A stretch of DNA of 64,000 nt from NCBI GenBank assembly GCA_028023455.1, contig JAQFVV010000006.1, positions 9,052,001-9,116,000 of the forward strand, given 5' to 3'. The DNA is from Epiperipatus broadwayi (taxonomy: Eukaryota > Animalia > Onychophora). Below are positions 16,390 through 64,000 of the stretch, in pieces. A program made the translations under genes and the position numbers. The notes beneath the pieces are model-generated. The model saw only the letters and a list, made by a program, of their open reading frames with translations. It ran no database searches and had not been told where the DNA came from. Within the stretch, counting starts at the first letter, position 1, and each line of letters opens with the position of its first letter.

Positions 16390-16860
16390 TAGTGGCATTT
16401 ATCATAAATATAAAAAAAAGCTTGTTTAGAGCTATTAGCACGCTCTTAATTTTACATATTTGTGTCATGTGACATCTGACTTGTTATTATTACTATTATT
16501 TTGCTGTTGTGGTTTTAGCTAAATTAAAGAGCTAAGCCTACTAATATATGGAGTATCTGAATTAAGTTCAGGCCCATATGATTTTTTCAGTTGGAGAGCT
16601 GACTTTAAAGACATGTAGATGTCTAAAAGTTTCAGATCTTTTTCTAACAATTATCTTTTAGATAAATGCTTTGCTTGAGTTGGTTTTTTAGATCTAATGT
16701 CCCAACTCCTCACTGAAGAGACCCATAGGTCGAAATCGGTCTGGGAATGGAGACAATCCAAGATAAAAATGATATGAATGCCTTCTCTTGTAGTGGCATT
16801 TATCATAAATATATAAAAAAGCTTGTTTAGAGCTATTAGCACGCTCTTAATTTTACATAT
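16390..16860 (+). mobile_element. Family B hammerhead-bearing element, ~401-bp monomer bounded by 70-bp direct repeats
   Basis: tagtggcatttatcat...gcttgtttagagctattagcacgctcttaattttacatat at 16390-16459 and 16791-16860. Homologous to the arms and spacer of the inverted repeat at 52694-53191. Confidence 0.75.
16708..16746 (+). ncRNA. Minimal type I hammerhead ribozyme (family B), canonical core
   Basis: CCTCA-CTGAAGA-GACC cata GGTC-GAAA-TCGG-TC-TGGGA: intact core, perfect 4-bp helix II, near-palindromic helix III (ATCGGT), GUC cleavage triplet. Confidence 0.85.
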
Positions 16861-24645: not shown

Positions 24646-26347
24646 GCGTGAAAGGTTTAGTTCAATGTTAAAAGCCGATTTGTTTATGTAATATAAATAT
24701 TTTAAAACTTGGAATCAATATTGAAAATATTTTATTGATATTTTATTTATCTAATAAATAATGTTAACGTTTATTGCATGTTGTGTGTATTGATGATTAT
24801 TAATAATTTTGTCTCTCTCGAAATATATATACATATATGTGTAATCAGAAAAAATAAGGAAAAGAAAGTCATACGTCACGTGATTTCATTAGCTTTTATT
24901 TACAAATGTAATATAAAGAGCTTGTTAATAGCTCTAAACAAGCTTTTTCGATACGTCCCGCAAGAGAAAGCATTTAAGATCTGTATTTAGAATGTCTTAG
25001 CGCCTCACCGACGGTTTGGGGCTAGGGATAACTCTAGAGATGTTAAATGCTTTCTCTTGCGGCATTTCTCGACAAAGCTTATTTAAGATGGAAAGATCTA
25101 CCCTTAAAATAAAGTGTCTTTTTGTCAAAAAAAAAAATGTTTAAAAAATGAAAGTAATAGAGGAAAGTTACTAAGATTTTTTTTCCGTTTGCGATCTTCG
25201 GTTTGATTTTGATAGGGGGATTTGTTTATGCATTCTTTTTCGTTGTAGTTATTATTTATTTATTTCAATTTCCTTTTTTGTGGTATATGCGTTTATTTAT
25301 AGTTCTGGAATTTGTCAGTGGTAATAATGATTTGAATTAAAATGTTTGTGTTTGTAACATCAATATTTGGAATATTGGCATATGAAATTTTTAAATATGT
25401 TTATGTTGTACATTTGTTTTAAAATTATTTGTGGTATAATTTTATTTGTTTATATATATATTTATGTTAAGCATATATAGGGTATGATGTTTGTATAATT
25501 TTCCCCCTTTTTTATCACACTTAATATTTGAAAATCCCCAATTGTATTAACAACAGGATTGACAGCATAACGCGTGAAGGACTAAGCCGAATATCATAGT
25601 AATAGAAAAAAAAAGTTTATTAACAATCGCCAGTAAAAAGAAAAACAACAATTTTTGCTGACATCAATCCGCTCATTTTTTTATATAAAATCAGTTAAGA
25701 TCACAGAAGTCATGGAATAGTATATGTTATTTATTTATGAGTTTAGTTTTTATAATCGAAATACATTCGGGATTCGAACTCAGACTTTCACATGACCCAC
25801 TACTTTCAGTGCTATCTCATATTGCTGACCCACCTGATCACACACATGTTGAAAAGATAAATAATCACCAATATAAGTATTTCATGCAAAACCAGAAATC
25901 ATCTGTTGGTCTAGATTACTACCCTCACACATATATCTAATCAGTGCTCAGCTTTATATTAAAATAGCCAATCTTCATACTTTAATGGACAGGCTTCAAA
26001 CTATTCCAACTCACAACTCTTTAGCCTTCCATTTCATTGAAAATCTGATGATGGAACGTTCAAAGCCCTTATTAGTGCCAAGGTTGTCATCCTACCCATG
26101 TTGACATATTAGTCATTCTGACCCCTCATGTACAGGAGAATAATCCATTTATACATACATATGCGAGAGATGGGTAGACCTATTACACACTATTTAAAAA
26201 TTAATACATTGTACAGGTTTAAACCTGCATTTATATATGTAATATATGCGGGATTCGAACTCAGACATTCACATGATCCACTACTTTCAGTGCCATCTCA
26301 TATTACTGACCCACCTGATCACACACATGTTGAAAAGATAAATAATC

Positions 26348-26391
26348 ACCAATATACATATTTCATGCTAAACCAGCAATCACCAGTTGGT
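26348..26391 (-). ncRNA. Hammerhead motif (family A), core variant CTGGTGA
   Basis: Reverse complement: ACCAA CTGGTGA ttgctggtttagcat GAAA tatgta TA TTGGT. A6 is mutated, so probably impaired. Confidence 0.55.
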
Positions 26392-26435
26392 CTAGATTAC
26401 TATTCTCACACACATATATATAAACAGTGCTCTAG

Positions 26436-26479
26436 ACCAACTGATGATTGCTGGTTTAGCATGAAATACATATATTGGA
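26436..26479 (+). ncRNA. Hammerhead ribozyme (family A)
   Basis: ACCAA CTGATGA ttgctggtttagcat GAAA tacata TA TTGG; core intact. Confidence 0.7.
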
Positions 26480-28534
26480 GATTATTTATCTTTTCAGCAT
26501 GTGTGATCAGGTGGGTCAGCAATATGAGATGGCACTGAAAGTAGTGGGTCGTGTGAAAGTCTGAGTTCAAATCCCGCATATATTACATATATAAATGCAG
26601 GTTTAAGCCTTGCAATGTATAATCGTAATACACAAACTAAAAGTTAGAACATTGTCAAATTAATTGTTAATAGATCCAGGTATACATAATAGACAATGAT
26701 ATATATTCTTTATTCATTTCTTAGATAAGTAAGGCATCCATTTTGTAATAATAATTCATGGGTCTAGGATTTAAAGAAGTACCTTCCTGCTCTCTCTTTT
26801 AATTCAGTCTCATGTTAAATTAATCTGAATCATTTCTTCAGAATTTATGTTATAATTTAATGGACTTAATTATTTAAGCAAGCTAAAGCCTCCTATCATC
26901 ACTGTTAGATACCTACGTATACATGTTTTATATTTAACTAGTCGGATAGGTACCGTTACAATATATATGTACATGTATGCATATATGTATAAAAACGTTT
27001 TTAATAATGTCTTCTTAAAGATATCTGTATGAACTCATCTACATATTATTACAAATTCATCTTCAATTGTCAGTACAATCTTAAATAAGTTTTACTGTGG
27101 GTGTATATAACAATGATTTTTACTAATCCTTTATTTATCTCGAGATTATCTTAACATTTTTAACATATATGAATTTAAAACTTGATGAAAAGATTTAGAA
27201 AACGAACTTGGGCTATGAAGTAGCCTCAAATTTGTACACACACCCGTGCTCAACTATTATTTGGTAAAACTTGATGCAGTTAATCTCCAACTCTATCCTA
27301 ATTTTTTTTAATGAAAAAGCATATTACCTTTTATCTGAATTTAAAATTTATATATGGTCTAGATATAACATAATCTCTACCCCAATAAAAGTATCTTATG
27401 TATGAAATTTTTTTTTTCTGTTGTCTGATTGGTGAATGTATGTTTGTCCATATGGCTGTCATTTGTCACATTCACAAACAATTAAAAAACTTATTATGCT
27501 TATGTGAAGGAAGTAATTCTACCATTAAGCTCAGAAAAAAATCAATACCTTTGCTTTTAACTAAAGAGATATAGTATTTAAATTGTGGAGAAAATATTAT
27601 TATCATACATAAATTCATATTTCAAATGTAATATTTATTGAGGACAGTGGATATAGAGGGGGAAATTTACATTTAGTTTGGTTGGCATTTATGGGAAGGA
27701 AATATTTCTGCCATTAACAAAAAAACTTGGGGAAAAAATCAGTACATGTGCTTTTAACTACAAAAATACAATATTTAAATTGCACCAAGAAAATGATTTT
27801 ACAGTAAATAAATTTATGTTTGAAATGTGATACTTTGTGAGCAGGGAAAATAGATGCTATAGCAATCATTTACATTTAGTTTTGGTTAGGTGTTATTGAA
27901 GTTGAACAGGATAGCCTTTTGGTGGTTTTACAATTCTTACATTTATTTATATAATATTAAAATCGTTTGTTTAATTTGCATCAGATCTTTAAAAAATTTG
28001 TAAATGCAACCAATTAAAAAGAAACATGGCCTATTTAAACTGGGTAGATCTGGTAACAATAATTATAATCACTAATGTATTTATTCAAATGAAATGTTTT
28101 AAAGCTGTGAATACAGGTAATGGGACAATTGGACATTAAATTATACTAATATATGAAGTAAAGGCTTTACTTGGTTATAAGCTAGATAAGTGCAGATTAA
28201 ATTGAATTGAGTATTAGTAAACCAATATAAAATTAAAGCATCATTAAATGAATGCATGAATTTTTTTTCACTCAGTCAAAGAGATTAATAAATAAAGAAA
28301 AAGTCAAAGCAATACAAATATTTTGGATTCTCTAGCGGATTGTGTTGATGAAATCAAAAGATTAATGAAATATTAAATCAATTATTGTAAGTTGCAGTAA
28401 CAGTCTAAATTAAAATATAAACCCTGTTTAGTGTAAACAGCTGGGAATAACCATTATGAACATTCACAGCTTTAGTTTGTAGAACTTGGATTGGTCAATA
28501 CAAATTGTATATCTTTAAAATACAGTATAAAAGG

Positions 28535-50107: not shown

Positions 50108-51960
50108 TCATCATCATCAACCATTACCAATCCACTGCAGGATGAAGGTCTCTCCAAGTTCAAACCATCTTCTCCGATCTTTAGCTTGGGGGTCTTCTCC
50201 ACATCACCCCTGCACACTTTCTTATTTCATCCATCCATCTCACATGTCTCTTTCTGGGTCTTTGGCAATCTCTTGAAATCCAGTTTAAGATTTCAATTGT
50301 CCATATGTTATCATCTCTTCTAGCAATATGTACAGCCCAACTCCACTTCAGTCTTTTAATTTTTTCAGTGAGGTCAATAACACCTGTTTGTTCTCTTACC
50401 CATATATTGCATTTTCGATCTCTTCTTGTTACTCCTAACATGCAGCTTTCCATACTTCTTTGAGTGGTCTGAAGTCTTTGTATTCTTTTTCTATTAAGTG
50501 TCCAAGTCTCAAATCCATAAGTAAGAATGGGTAAAACACATTTATTAAAAACCTTTTTTTTTTCAAACACGTAGGCATATTTCCTTTTAGTATCAAGTTA
50601 TTTCTATCAAAAGAACTCTAAACAAATTTAATTCTATGATTAATTTCAATCATTATGTTTCCATCTGTATCAATAATCTGACTAAGATATTTGTAGCTGT
50701 TAACTTCTTCTAACTCATCATAATCAATCTTTATTTTCCTACTTTCATCTGGTAACTCCTGCAATATTTCCTGCAGCTCTAACGTATTATTTACAAAAAC
50801 AACTACATCATCTGCAAAATTTAATTGACTTAAATAATCTCCATTTACTTTCACTTCTTTAGCTTTCCATTTTAATCCATAAAATACTTCTTACAGCACT
50901 GCTGAAAATGTTTTGGAGATATGGAGTCACTCTGTCTAACACCCTTCTCAATGTTGACTTTTCTAATATCATTATATAATCTAATTATTGTTGTTGCATT
51001 TTTATAAATATACTTTAAAATATGACAATATCCTGGATTTACACCTTGATGATCCAATGCTTTAATCACTGAAGAAATGTTTATAGAATCAAATGCCTTT
51101 TCATAATCTACAAATCCAAAGCATAATGGCAACTCATATTCACTTGTCCTTCCAATACCGGGATATGATAATCCAGCTTGTTCTCTTGGTTGGTGGAAAT
51201 CCAATATTCCCTGTAGACGAGTTGTAATTATCTTGGTAAAAAAATGGTATAAAACTGATAAAAAGGCTGATAGGTCTGTAATTTCTAATATCTTCTTTAT
51301 CACCTTTTTAAATATTAATATTAATACTGCATTCTTCCAATCATCTGGTACATCTTTATCATTTAGACATTTGATATATAACTTTGCTAAAAAATTCTAT
51401 TTTTTACCTGCTTCTTTTAATATATCAATTATAATTCCATCATTATAATTCCTTTGCCTGTTCTTTATTATTATATAATTCTTGATAGAAGTCTTCTACC
51501 CATTTCATGATGTCATCTCTCTTTTTAGTAATAGTTCCATCTTTTTTCCTTATTGCAGATATAAATTTCCTACCAATACCAAAATACTGTTTTACAATCT
51601 TGAGACTTTTATTCTCTTCTACAGTTTTACTCTCTAGTCCACAGTTATACTTTCTTATATCATTTTCAACTATTTTCTGCACTATTTTACAAAATTCGAG
51701 GTATTCAATCCTTTTTAATGCACCATTTTTGTATAGCTTCATATTCCTTCTTTTCTTCATAAATTCTCTAGTCTCAGTAGAAATTTTATTGCTCAATTGC
51801 TGCTTTTTTCTACCAGCTATCTTTGCTACAGTTTTTAAAAGTGTATCAGTTATTTTCTTATTAATTTCATTCAAATCTGAATCATATTCAAAATCTACTA
51901 ATCCTTGAAAACGATTTGTAAGTTCTAATTTAAATTCATTAGAGTGTTTCTGAAGATGAG
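50108..51960 (-). mobile_element. RTE-clade LINE, 5'-truncated and frameshifted
   Basis: ITTRLQGILDFHQPREQAG, FVDYEKAFDSI, KGVRQSDSISPK, LNFADDVV, CVLPILTYGFETW, LKWSWAVHIARR and (GAT)n tail. Confidence 0.95.
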
Positions 51961-53199: not shown

Positions 53200-54700
53200 A
53201 TATTCATGGATAAATGATGATTTCATATTATTATTAATTTCGGGATATTCTATGTAGTAAAATAGCTAAATAGCTGATGTTTTCGTACAATAACAAGTAC
53301 CTTCCTCAGAGCGTTCTCTTTCTCAACTCATAGGAATGCATGTACTTAAATTCTATTGGTTGAGAAGTTTTAAAATTTATTTTGTCTTCCAATAGCTTCT
53401 TCCAAATGTTGTTCACACCTTTCATTTATGCTCTTGGGCCTTTTAAAAATCTCTATAGCTTCTCTTAGCAATCTCTGGTCATATTGTTCAATTTTTGCTA
53501 GAATATTTGTTTTATCAAAATTGATATCATGATTAGTTAATTTTATATGAGAATAAATAGCTGATGAATTGGATTTTTCTCTGACTGCCAAAATGTGTTC
53601 TTCCTTTCGAATATTTATTCTACGATTAGTCTGTCCAATATATATATGTGAACAGACCCTACATGGAATTTCATATACACCATGATACTCCAAAGAAATT
53701 TTATCTTTAGGAAGTGGAAATATTTCATTAATTTTTTTAAAAGTAGTGTAAACTGTGTGAACATTATTATTCTTTAAAATGTTACCAATTTTATCAGTTA
53801 CTTCTTTTATATATGGCAAACGTGTCTTAATTTCTGATGTATCAAAATCTTTTTTTTCTTTTTATATGTATAAGCCCTATTAATAATGCTGTAATTAAAA
53901 CCATTATCAAGAAGCATTTTTTAGTAGCAGAAATATCCTGGAGAAAATGGCTATCATCAGAAAGTCTCTTAGTTCTATCCAACAATGTCGTGCAGGATGG
54001 TGATAAGAATAAAAATGTAGATACGTCCCAGTGTGTGCTGGTTTTTTATGTATACCATGAGATAAAGAACCATCTTCCCTTCTTTCAATTAAAACATCTA
54101 AAAAAGGTAATTGGTTATTATTTTCTATTTACATAGTAAATCAGATATTGTTGTGTAAAGTTTAAAAAATTATAAAAAGGCAACAAGAGCATGCTTTCCA
54201 TGAGGCCAAATAACAAAGGTATCATCAACATATCTCAGCCATATAGATGGTTTTTTTAACTGCTGAAGTCAAAAGTTTATTTTCCAAATCCTCCATAAAA
54301 ATATAAGCTAATGCTGTAGAAATTGGTGAACCCATGGCTAGACCTGATGTTTGTTTATACATCTGCCCATCAAAAACAAAAAATGTATTCGATAAGCAGT
54401 GTTCAATCAAAACCACAGCAAAATTAGGTAATTGAATATTTTTTAAAACTTAAATAGCTTCATTTACAGGTACACTAATAAAAAATGAAACAATATCAAA
54501 ACTGACCAAAATATCATTCTTAGTCAATTTAATATCCCGGATAAGTTCAAGAAAATGATTGGCATCTTCAACATATGATGACATTTCTGTTAAATGTGGC
54601 AGTAAAAAAGAAGTCTAAAACGAGCTAGTGTCTGAACCAATTGCACTTACAATCGGTCTCAATGGAATATCTGGTTTGTGAATTCAATATTAATCTAATT
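53200..54700 (-). mobile_element. Decayed Penelope-like retroelement (RT plus GIY-YIG)
   Basis: [79 protein letters not shown]. May extend further upstream. Confidence 0.95.
53273..53312 (-). ncRNA. Minimal hammerhead in the PLE 3' terminal repeat
   Basis: GCT-CTGAGGA-AG-GTAC ttgttatt GTAC-GAAA-ACA-TC-AGC, ~60 nt downstream of the GIY-YIG stop at 53370. Confidence 0.7.
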
Positions 54701-55856
54701 GTGCATGCGTGAAGCCCTCCACAAGATTAAATACATATATATATATAATACTTTGAGATTAATTATCTCGCAATTGTTACAACAGATAATTGAAATGCCT
54801 TTTAGCCATAGCATAAAAAAAACAATTTTTTATAAGACAAGAACTACCTGTCTTCTCTCCTGCTCTCATTTTCTTAAATAGAAGAATATCTGAAAAACTT
54901 AGGCTATAAAAAATGAATATTTAATTCAATCACAAAATTTATTTTAAATTTACTGATATCACTAATTGACATATTAGTTTTCAGGTTATATTATCTATTG
55001 TTTTTCGATGAATGGTTAGAAGTAGAAGCAGTATTTTTTCTATTTACTCTACTTCCAGAAATACCTATTATAAGGTTGTAAAATCAAATGATGTTTCATG
55101 ATCAGTTTTTCTCTGGAATACAGAGGAAATTGAATGAATTGCTGCTACTAAAGCAGAGGTTGAAAGTAAAGAAACTCAGGTGATGTTTACAATATGTGGC
55201 TCTGTAGTAGGATAGCTAAAATAAATTACTGCTACTAATGCAGATGGTGAAAGTAAACAGAAAGTTATGTGAGATTTACAGTAGGTGATTCTGCAGCAAA
55301 GTATGTACGGTAAATTACTGTTCTTAATGGGATGGTTAAAGTAAGCAGAGGAAATCACGATGCTTTGTAGCTGTTATGTGAATATGTTATTCAGAAATAA
55401 TTTTCAATAAAATAAAGCCATCTTTAAGGGTATTTTTATCCATATGTAGTTAAAATGGCATTTAATTGATTTTTTTTGTTTAAATGGTTTATTCATATTT
55501 TTAGCTTTTCAATTATATACCAATGTTCTAAGTACACTAATGCACAAAGGAAATGTGAACAAGTATAATTTTGAAGTTTTGTTATATACATCCAGAAAAG
55601 AGCTCCATTTGCAAATGATTAACGATTGGGAATGTACAGATATAGAATCAGCTGTTAATTTGATTATACAAAAATGTCACGTAAGTTTATTACATTGTGT
55701 AGATATGACGTTGTTTTTATAATTATAATTTAAAAGTATAAATAAAATCTGTAATGATAATAAACCTTTCAATGTACTGTATTTATAAATTTTACTTTTT
55801 ATTATTAATGTTGTAAACTATTAGGAATTTTAAACTTCTCTCTCGATATTATAATA

Positions 55857-56100
55857 TATATATAATTAAAAACGTGTGAAGCGCTTGAAGGAGAAACTAT
55901 AGAGATTCAAAAAATATTAAACGCTAAGCGCTTTCAATGCCGTTTGCCTCATATTCATAGCGATAATGCGAAATGCAGCCTCATATTCATTATCGCTATG
56001 AATATGAGGCAAACGGCCTCGAAAGCGCTTAGCATTTAATTTTTTTTGCACTCTCTATAGCTTCTTTTTCAAGCGCTTCCCACGCTTTTAAATTTATATA
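55857..56100. repeat. Fold-back (arms ~110 bp) carrying A3-U8 hammerhead motifs
   Basis: 55857-55968 is the reverse complement of 55988-56100. The spacer partly repeats gcctcatattcat. Confidence 0.9.
55995..56033 (+). ncRNA. Minimal hammerhead with A3-U8 core
   Basis: GCT-ATGAATA-T-GAGGC aaacg GCCTC-GAAA-GCGC-TT-AGC; palindromic helix III AGCGCT. The mirror copy at 55922-55962 (-) has helix II damaged. Confidence 0.65.
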
Positions 56101-56130
56101 TTATTAATGTTATGTAAATAAACATACCTT

Positions 56131-61921: not shown

Positions 61922-62445
61922 GGTACTTCTAGATATCTGGATAAAACAATTGCTTCTATCTGCCTGGATAAAACAAATGTTTCTGTATACCTGGATAGAA
62001 TTAATTGCTTCTATATGCCTGGATAAAACAAATGTTTCTGTATATCTGGATAAAGCAAGTGCTTCTAGATAACTGGATAAAAACAAATACTTCCATATAT
62101 CTTGATAAAGTCAAATATTTCTATATACCTGGATAAAGCAAATACTTCTAGATATCTGGATAAAAACAAATACTTTTACGTACCTAGATAAATCAGATTC
62201 TTCTGTATACCTGGATAAAAACAAATACTTTTATATACCTGGATAAATCAGATTCTTCTGTATACCTAGATAGAATCAAGTGTATTTCTTCTAGATACCC
62301 AGATAAAAACATATACTTCTTTGTACCTGGATGAAATTAAGTGCTTCTAGATACCTGAATAACCTGGATAAAAACAAATACTTTTAGATACCAGGATAAA
62401 ACAAATACTTCTAGATACCGGGATAAAACAAATACTTCTATACAT
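61922..62445. repeat. ~26-bp minisatellite (tacctggataaaacaaatacttctaga-like), about 20 copies
   Basis: ctggataaaa and variants recur every ~25-28 bp. Confidence 0.95.
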
Positions 62446-62664
62446 GTGGATATGTATCTATGCAGATGAGGGAACTTCAAACCAAGAAGGACATTTCCCA
62501 CTCAGGAATAATGTGCACATGGATATGAAGACAGCCAGAAAAGAGACTGTCAACAAACTTTTTCTTCTTCTTCTTTAAGAACTTTATACTGAATATTATA
62601 AAAACAAAAAATACTTAATTGTATATTAATTAGAGAAAATATAACTTACTATTAAAAATTTTTC

Positions 62665-62705
62665 GGCTGAACATTTTCGAGGAACCATGCCTCATACTCA
62701 TAGCC
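62665..62705 (-). ncRNA. Minimal hammerhead with A3-U8 core in the 3' end of the intact PLE
   Basis: GGCT-ATGAGTA-T-GAGG catggtt CCTC-GAAA-ATGT-TC-AGCC: 4-bp helix I, 4-bp helix II, near-palindromic helix III AATGTT, UUC site; ~55 nt after the ORF stop. Confidence 0.75.
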
Positions 62706-62759
62706 TTCATGAAAAGTGTAATAAATATATGCAAATGTAAATATTCAAATAAGCTACTG

Positions 62760-64000
62760 TTACGTAGCCCATTTTTTCGAGATCTCGAAGCATGTGTCCT
62801 TTCTGTTAATGGCATGGATGTCTCTATTAATATAGAATGCCTCCTTTATTTTTCTCCTGTAATCATTTGGCTCTGAACATAAAATAATGGGGTTGGCAGG
62901 TATGAAGTTGTGCCCAGATTGTTTACTATGTTCGAAAAATACGGAGGATGTGTTGCTGTTCGTTTGAGCTCTGTTGAATGTGTAACGATGTTGAGCCAAT
63001 CTGGTATTAATTGTGGCTTTCGTTTCCCCATAATATGTAGCGTGGCATCCGGCTTGAGGGCAGGAAATAGAGTACACCACGTGTGGGGTGAGCGATCGAT
63101 CAATGTGGTCTTTAGAGTTATTGATCAACCTATTGGAATTGGGTGGAGTTCTGAATATTATGTTGAATTTATTGTTTAAAGTTTTCGTTAGTTTGCTGGA
63201 TATTTTAGGGATGTAGGGGATTGTTATTCTAGGTAGATTAGTGCGAGGTAATTTATTGTTTATTGTACTATTAAATTTCATGATTTTCTTTTTAATGGTT
63301 TTATATTTGAATCCTGCTGCCAATAGATCTTTAGTATAATTGTTTATATTTTCCTTCCTATGTGCTTCGTATTTACACAGATGAAAGTTTCTAAACAAAA
63401 ATGCATTAAGACCTGCAAATTTGTGCGATGCGGGTGAGTTAGAGTTAGGGTGGATACAGCTGCGAATTTCAAATGGTTTAACAATCATTTTGTAATCTAT
63501 TGAGTGGCGATTTCTCGATAAAGAGAGGTCGAGATATTTGAGTTCTTTATTATTTTCATATGTGATAGTGAATGATAGTTTGGTTGAGTTTTGTAATTCA
63601 CGTTGTATATTTAAAATATTATTTTTAGAGGTTATGATGAAAATATCGTCTACATATCGTATATATATGAAGTCTAGGTTAGTGTTGAAGTATTTTGGAA
63701 TGATGGATTGCTCGTATTTATTTAAATATATACTAGATAAAACACCACTAATAGGAAGGCCCATGGGCCAACCATCTTGCATTGTGTACCATTTGTTTTC
63801 GAAGAGTGTAAATATATGGGAATCAAGCCATGTCAAGAAGGCCATAATAAATTTAATTCTTTCATTAGGACAAGATACTCGTAACAGCTCTTTGTGTATA
63901 ATTTGGATGGATGCTTTTCTATTAATTGATCCGTATAATTCCTTCACATCCATCGTAGCCATAACAGAACTATGAGAGATTTGAGTATTTTTAATTCTGG
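62760..64000 (-). CDS. Penelope-like element RT plus GIY-YIG endonuclease ORF (5' end outside the window)
   Basis: Uninterrupted for more than 400 aa, with TMDVKELYGSI, GWPMGLPISGVLSSIYL, RYVDDIF, KYLDL, VYSISCPQAGCHATYYGETKATINTRLAQHR and RRKIKEAFYI. The frame stays open from 63962 to the window end. Confidence 0.95.
   Translation of the reverse strand, partial: RIKNTQISHSSVMATMDVKELYGSINRKASIQIIHKELLRVSCPNERIKFIMAFLTWLDSHIFTLFENKWYTMQDGWPMGLPISGVLSSIYLNKYEQSIIPKYFNTNLDFIYIRYVDDIFIITSKNNILNIQRELQNSTKLSFTITYENNKELKYLDLSLSRNRHSIDYKMIVKPFEIRSCIHPNSNSPASHKFAGLNAFLFRNFHLCKYEAHRKENINNYTKDLLAAGFKYKTIKKKIMKFNSTINNKLPRTNLPRITIPYIPKISSKLTKTLNNKFNIIFRTPPNSNRLINNSKDHIDRSLTPHVVYSISCPQAGCHATYYGETKATINTRLAQHRYTFNRAQTNSNTSSVFFEHSKQSGHNFIPANPIILCSEPNDYRRKIKEAFYINRDIHAINRKDTCFEISKKWAT

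Follow-up and report, generated by a model that had tools for sequence, protein, structure and literature searches.

A minimal hammerhead motif with an A3-U8 core in the 3' region of a Penelope-like element of Epiperipatus broadwayi

A 64,000-nucleotide stretch of Epiperipatus broadwayi DNA (referred to here as the window) carries, at 62665-62705 on the minus strand, a minimal hammerhead motif with A and U at core positions 3 and 8. The position of the motif behind a Penelope-like reading frame, its structural hallmarks, its recurrence in a second element and the pattern of constraint between the two make it very probable, as far as sequence can tell, that this is a member of the minimal hammerhead lineage of Penelope elements with an A3-U8 core. 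The best explanation, which we consider probable, is that it represents the terminal-repeat or 3' UTR minimal hammerhead of a very high-copy, recently active Penelope family in which C3-G8 has changed to A3-U8.

A sequence-only reading of the window had pointed to a minus-strand hammerhead string with U4, G5, A6 and A9, GAAA and a UH cleavage site. The 41-nt string quoted there has a single exact occurrence in the window, at 62665-62705, and A and U indeed occupy positions 3 and 8. By direct reading of the sequence, the motif is composed as follows:

62665-62705, minus strand: minimal hammerhead motif with A3-U8 core
62702-62705 with 62665-62668, minus strand: helix I, GGCU/AGCC, 4 bp
62695-62701, minus strand: core positions 3-9, AUGAGUA (A3 U4 G5 A6 G7 U8 A9)
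62701 and 62696, minus strand: A3 and U8, respectively
62694, minus strand: unpaired U between A9 and helix II
62690-62693 with 62679-62682, minus strand: helix II, GAGG/CCUC, 4 bp
62683-62689, minus strand: loop 2, CAUGGUU, 7 nt
62676-62678, minus strand: G12 A13 A14, read as GAA
62670-62675, minus strand: self-complementary hexamer from 15.1 to 16.1, AAUGUU
62669, minus strand: C17, the predicted cleavage-site base
between 62669 and 62668, minus strand: predicted cut

All of the hammerhead core invariants (U4 G5 A6, A9, G12-A14, A15.1-U16.1 and H17, here C17) are present in this motif. The consensus C3 and G8 (as in CUGANGA) are replaced by A and U, which can still form a Watson-Crick pair, and the G10.1-C11.1 pair is in place (G62693 with C62679). 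The statement that all three helices exist is right for helices I and II, which form with 4 bp each, and needs correcting for helix III: in cis there are just two A-U pairs enclosing a 2-nt 'loop', and the helix can be built only between two RNAs. When the hexamer AAUGUU is paired with a second AAUGUU, a 6-bp duplex results, with two G.U pairs in the window copy; the 15.2-16.2/loop 3 segment is thus self-complementary and a dimeric helix III is possible, as in Penelope minimal hammerheads. The unpaired base, the G10.1-C11.1 pair and the self-complementary hexamer uphold the earlier assignment to the minimal, dimer-type hammerheads of Penelope elements, and the unpaired U after A9 is no oddity but a published hallmark of that class (PMC4209133).

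Folding energies are of little help here. The fold of the motif is no more stable than that of shuffled sequence (z = 0.55), and nearest-neighbour folding disfavours the hammerhead dimer (-13.2 kcal/mol, versus -23.0 kcal/mol for the minimum free energy dimer). The hammerhead dimer of a canonical motif in the same window, used as a control (described below), is likewise not its minimum-energy dimer; since variant and control both miss the minimum, energy models do not discriminate between them.

The motif lies downstream of a Penelope-like element (PLE-A), of which the following parts are visible:

62760-64000, minus strand: PLE-A open reading frame (ORF), C-terminal ~412 codons, with reverse transcriptase (RT) motifs (YVDD among them), then a linker and a putative CCHH-bearing GIY-YIG endonuclease
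62706-62759, minus strand: 3' UTR spacer of 54 nt from stop codon to hammerhead, with high copy depth
62594-62664, minus strand: A/T-rich 3' tail of ~70 nt, delimited by the depth table and loose contig ends

The stop codon of PLE-A is at 62760-62762 (minus strand) and the reading frame is open up to the window edge at 64000. The N-terminal part of the ORF and the 5' half of the element lie past that edge, so the earlier label of an intact element reaches further than the window shows. The ORF matches Pfam RVT_1 (E 8e-11), the whole of its visible part aligns to residues 164-571 of P0001, a 612-aa RT and GIY-YIG protein, and its C-terminal part can be aligned with the GIY-YIG ORF of another element in the window (PLE-B, below); on these results it is probably the C-terminal half to two-thirds of a Penelope-like element with a C-terminal endonuclease. 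In the C-terminus, a C..C..H..H and a Y-x-G-E-T pattern are recognisable by eye, and Pfam GIY-YIG gives no direct match. The hammerhead is on the coding strand, 54 nt past the stop codon: it occupies the same-strand 3' region of an RT and GIY-YIG element, where Penelope minimal hammerheads are found, and the original placement at the 3' end of a Penelope-like element is confirmed. Copy depth in the DNA run (see below) drops from ~3e4-4.6e4 to ~1e3 below ~62594, which indicates that PLE-A extends ~70 nt past the motif.

A protein search for further copies of PLE-A yielded just two distant relatives (24-27% identity), and the C-terminal domain alone, used as the query, found none. The contigs of the two relatives have no recognisable hammerhead in their short flanks. 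Two other features were observed in the vicinity of the Penelope copies: a tandem array of 27/55/110-nt units (72-92% matches) at 61924-62452, ~140 nt beyond the estimated 3' end of PLE-A, and a retroelement remnant consisting of two 143-aa ORFs at 50872-51874 (minus strand) that resemble fragments of a non-LTR (LINE-type) reverse transcriptase.

A second A3-U8 element is located at 55.9 kb:

55995-56033, plus strand: second A3-U8 hammerhead motif (T2b), GCU-AUGAAUA-U-GAGG..CCUC-GAA-AGCGCU-U-AGC
55923-55961, minus strand: inverted partner of T2b (T2a), also with an A3-U8 core, in which helix II has decayed on its 3' side, with CAUU in place of CCUC
55851-56104, both orientations: head-to-head pair of 5'-truncated Penelope 3' ends, with arms at 55851-55975 and 55980-56104

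The two arms are ~125 nt each and 85% identical, and each consists of a hammerhead and a ~70-nt tail, as does the 3' end at 62.6 kb. Truncated copies in inverted pairs are a published hallmark of Penelope elements (PMC4209133; PMC8557442). The pair is flanked by the 13-mer TATTATTAATGTT, at 55800-55812 and 56101-56113, which may be its target-site duplication; ~40 nt of extra sequence lie between the left 13-mer and the left arm. In T2b, the helix III hexamer AGCGCU is a perfect palindrome.

Comparison of 62665-62705 with T2b shows differences at 12 of 41 positions, and all 12 fall within the 15 positions that are unconstrained in the hammerhead model (N7, loop 2, the inner four bases of the hexamer/loop 3, N17 and the outer pair of helix I). 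The constrained positions are identical (26/26; hypergeometric P = 5.8e-8). Outside the motif, the ~70-nt tails of the two copies are unalignable, with 41 identities against a shuffled mean of 41.1. This division between free and constrained positions is the one expected if the hammerhead fold is conserved. The sequences also indicate that A3/U8 is not a private decay of the 62.6-kb copy, as another element, whose flanks are unrelated, has it too.

To survey further copies, contigs of four public runs were placed on 62540-63340 at 80% likeness. The DNA run contributed 1090 contigs on these 801 bases, and 291 of the contigs are at least 99% alike. Its summed depth reaches 2e5-4e5, with 2e5 in the core versus ~1e3 beyond the end of the element. 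These figures denote a very high-copy, recently active family; the core variant, which had been described as rare, is not rare in this genome. Among the best-supported 40 of 183 variant places, there is no alternative letter at 62701 (position 3) or 62696 (position 8), and no variant anywhere in 62675-62831. The possibility, raised when the motif was first described, that other copies lack A3-U8 is not borne out by the second element, which has A3 and U8, or by these best-supported places. The near-identity of many copies owes partly to recent amplification and not to selection.

The sole variant within the motif among the best-supported 40 of 183 places is at 62673. The commoner letter there is C (read on the minus strand), with 39,081 of 69,242 depth in the DNA run and nearly all of the depth in two other runs. 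With C at this position the hexamer becomes AACGUU, a perfect palindrome; the window copy has U where other copies have a CpG. This U in the helix III hexamer, where the majority of copies have C, gives the window copy a weaker dimer helix than is usual in the family.

Two of the runs are labelled 'RNA?' by guess only. One assembled contig from an 'RNA?' run is continuous across the predicted cut site. The ends of contigs at 62679 were considered as cleavage products and rejected: they are found in the DNA run too and hence originate from assembly. Runs X6 and X8, labelled as a different organism (B), include contigs identical to PLE-A over 180-426 nt; either two taxa, as labelled, share the PLE-A family nearly unchanged, or the two labels stand for very close forms.

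The frequency with which such motifs arise by chance depends strongly on the descriptor. A loose hammerhead descriptor gives ~6 matches per shuffled window, ~0.7 of them with A..U, and with this many chance matches it is useless alone. We also used a strict descriptor for Penelope minimal hammerheads, comprising one unpaired base after A9, G10.1-C11.1, at least 4 Watson-Crick pairs in helix II, GAAA, a self-complementary hexamer, H17 and at least 3 pairs in helix I, with any base allowed at 3 and 8. This descriptor had 0 matches in 400 simulated windows (expectation <0.0025 per window) and two independent matches in the real window, both A..U. The 16 specified core bases GCUAUGA-N-UAUGAGGCA have three exact occurrences in the window. 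Beyond the window, a pattern scan of metagenomes for core plus helix II produced 22 matches, a count within the estimated chance range, of which 0/22 had helix I; the same scan of viral contigs produced 0 matches.

Other hammerhead-like motifs of the window, canonical or otherwise, are these:

16709-16745, plus strand: canonical C3-G8 minimal hammerhead, CUGAAGA, recognised by Rfam Hammerhead_1 and used as the internal control
53370-54542, minus strand: PLE-B, a decayed Penelope-like ORF with RT and GIY-YIG fragments, 25% identical to PLE-A
53273-53312, minus strand: candidate canonical CUGAGGA (C3-G8) hammerhead remnant, 57 nt past the PLE-B stop codon
25789-25846 (minus strand), 26270-26327 (minus strand) and 26498-26555 (plus strand): loose-descriptor matches with a GUGAUCA (G3..C8) core in a three-copy repeat

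The canonical hammerhead sits within a unit at 16390-16860 (plus strand) that has a 70-nt direct repeat at either end, the two copies being 99% identical at a spacing of 401 nt; to judge by its sequence, this unit looks like slightly over one copy of a retrozyme-like tandem monomer. The GUGAUCA matches were rejected as chance, given that helix I consists of wobble pairs throughout, 10.1-11.1 is a G.U pair and a palindromic helix III is missing. The repeat that contains them ends in a tRNA-like GGGATTCGAAC block and has an inverted copy pair at 26250-26600.

The candidate behind PLE-B shares helix I (GCU/AGC) and N7 with the 62.6-kb motif and differs in helix II (GUAC/GUAC); it has two unpaired nucleotides after A9 and a non-palindromic loop 3. 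An Rfam scan of 53273-53312 recognised no hammerhead, and for this reason the motif is kept as a candidate only. If it is real, positions 3 and 8 would be the only ones in the core at which the PLE-A and PLE-B families differ. Since the CUGAGGA candidate lies at an equivalent distance (57 nt) and has a different helix II, positions 3/8 and helix II would then covary between the families. Both helix II and the 3-8 pair of the A3-U8 motif differ in a compensatory manner from those of the PLE-B candidate and the 16.7-kb motif, a comparison of 3-5 sequences, one of them a decayed candidate. A MAFFT alignment of the five motifs mis-registers helix II in two rows.

Standard covariance models do not find the A3-U8 motifs. 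Rfam at gathering thresholds has zero matches over the entire window. In permissive scans there is no hammerhead at E<=10 in either 62300-63000, where only chance snoRNA-like matches appear, or the 55.9-kb inverted pair; Hammerhead_1 does find the canonical motif at 16709-16745 in such a scan (29.9 bits, E 9.5e-6). Because Rfam is silent on the A3-U8 motifs yet detects the canonical internal control, the prediction that standard searches would miss this variant holds.

By analogy with published Penelope hammerheads, a single motif would be inert, its helix III being provided by the self-complementary hexamer only. Two motifs (tandem copies on one transcript, or two transcripts) would pair via the hexamer and exchange helix I, and the paired motifs would form two composite active sites, each expected to cut after C17, on the 5' side of 62668, and to leave a 2',3'-cyclic phosphate and a 5'-OH. 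With A3-U8 as the pair, the ribose of residue 8, which acts as the general acid, may still be held in its active-site position. Compared with C3-G8, purine and pyrimidine are swapped and there is one hydrogen bond fewer; slow cleavage is predicted for both reasons, probably aided by the element's own protein. We infer from this scheme a putative role in the processing of multimeric element transcripts.

For the A3-U8 motif itself, we put the chances of catalytic competence at about even. Competence is suggested by two transversions that would restore the pair, by catalytic positions strictly kept across unalignable flanks and by maintenance of the palindrome; it is opposed by published mutagenesis (PMC9901934), by the feeble activity of this ribozyme class and by the ability of Penelope elements to manage without cleavage. 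Penelope minimal hammerheads likely act as dimers, and even canonical ones cleave poorly in vitro (PMC4209133). More tentatively, and as something a little short of an even bet, we propose that A3-U8 is a competent natural core that is standard in a whole currently active Penelope lineage, and that all four Watson-Crick pairs are allowed at 3-8 in vivo, perhaps only with the element's protein.

The motif may instead be a catalytically dead passenger: a descendant of a Penelope hammerhead, copied along with an element that does not need cleavage. We regard this as unlikely, though it draws on several published results. Comprehensive double mutagenesis of a type III hammerhead found strong rescue only by the G3-C8 swap, other doubles in the CUGA-turn region being low and the A-U and U-A doubles not being among those rescued (Roberts et al. 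2023, PMC9901934); against this, neutral fixation of two transversions that restore a Watson-Crick pair is itself unlikely. For the lizard Penelope element PAc, C3G/G8C partly restores hammerhead cleavage, which requires the element's protein and is dispensable for insertion in vitro: hammerhead mutants have no effect on insertion, and no RNA-seq ends are seen at the site (PMC11167929). Naiad elements proliferate well without hammerheads (Craig et al. 2021, PMC8557442, whose searches used cuganga cores). Many copies of the present family are at least 99% alike, and their identity is in part a matter of youth; a dead passenger would nonetheless leave unexplained why every T2b difference is at a free position while the constrained ones are identical despite unalignable tails (P ~6e-8), and why the commoner letter at 62673 preserves a perfect helix III palindrome.

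A further alternative, which we consider improbable, is that the motif has a non-ribozyme role: its stem-loop and the bases beside it would be where the element's reverse transcriptase recognises the RNA or initiates, or would belong to a terminal-repeat promoter, the hammerhead appearance being inherited and unused. Reverse transcription of Penelope elements initiates at internal sites in the 3' region, where the protein binds the RNA (PMC11167929), and the lack of variants among the best-supported 40 of 183 places covers 62675-62831 entire, beyond the motif. However, the variation fits the hammerhead model in detail, with N7, the loops and N17 free and U4 G5 A6 A9 G12-A14 fixed, and self-complementarity of the hexamer is kept with different sequences (AACGUU/AAUGUU versus AGCGCU), for which a protein-binding site gives no reason. 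Finally, a chance look-alike in A/T-rich DNA, as the yield of the loose descriptor and the shuffle-like fold stability might suggest, is refuted by the strict-descriptor null, the three exact copies of the core string, the fixed place behind a Penelope ORF and a family of a thousand contigs.

The textbook hammerhead consensus includes the C3-G8 pair, as do nearly all search descriptors. A natural U3-A8 pair is already published, and A3-U8 would extend this natural covariation at 3-8; what would be new is an A-U pair, with purine 3 and pyrimidine 8, that prevails in a high-copy retrotransposon family of recent activity. If our interpretation is true, the natural sequence space of the hammerhead ribozyme is widened, nature has provided a test of base identity at residue 8, whose ribose is the general acid, and censuses of ribozyme-bearing retroelements are shown to be biased. 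Were A3-U8 competent, descriptors based on CUGANGA would undercount hammerheads systematically, possibly including those of elements now described as hammerhead-less. Its place behind an open RT/endonuclease reading frame makes the 62665-62705 copy a convenient specimen.

The primary paper on Penelope hammerhead dimers is reportedly that of Lunse, Weinberg and Breaker from 2017, and that on 3-8 exchanges is said to be by Przybilski and Hammann, from 2007. Minimal Penelope hammerheads are characterized by a conserved unpaired nucleotide between 9 and 10.1, a G10.1-C11.1 pair and a palindromic 15.2-16.2/loop 3 (Cervera and de la Pena 2014, PMC4209133). The motif described here shares with them the type I topology and short 4-bp helix I, the unpaired nucleotide between A9 and G10.1, the G10.1-C11.1 pair, the self-complementary 15.1-16.1 segment that replaces helix III in cis, the location in a terminal repeat or 3' UTR on the ORF strand, and frequent solo and inverted truncated copies. 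It differs from them in its core, which is AUGANUA rather than CUGANGA, and its helix II has 4 bp, versus 6-8 bp in the Schistosoma and Drosophila families. An additional nucleotide at this place, after A9 and before G10.1, is also known from viroid hammerheads (De la Pena and Flores 2001, cited in PMC4209133); its counterpart here is the single unpaired U at 62694, at the 5' end of helix II, which is ordinary for the class.

With respect to the 3-8 pair, the closest natural parallels are U3-A8 covariants, which occur in the Cercyon Penelope elements of Schistosoma mansoni (~1,300 matches; PMC4209133) and as natural covariation in several hammerheads (Perreault et al. 2011, PMC3088659, where earlier in vitro activity of 3-8 covariants is cited). 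We found no report of a natural A3-U8 hammerhead in open-access literature text. Like the U3-A8 covariants, the present motif has changed in nature at both 3 and 8 with the Watson-Crick pairing preserved, is high-copy in one genome and is missed by CUGANGA descriptors. U3-A8 retains the pyrimidine 3 and purine 8 of C3-G8, whereas A3-U8 inverts both. In this it resembles G3-C8, the engineered swap (Martick and Scott 2006, cited by PMC11167929; PMC9901934), which also has purine 3, pyrimidine 8 and a restored pair, and with which cleavage is partially rescued, in the Penelope element PAc among others; the G-C pair is laboratory-made, unlike A3-U8, which is in addition the weaker of the two.
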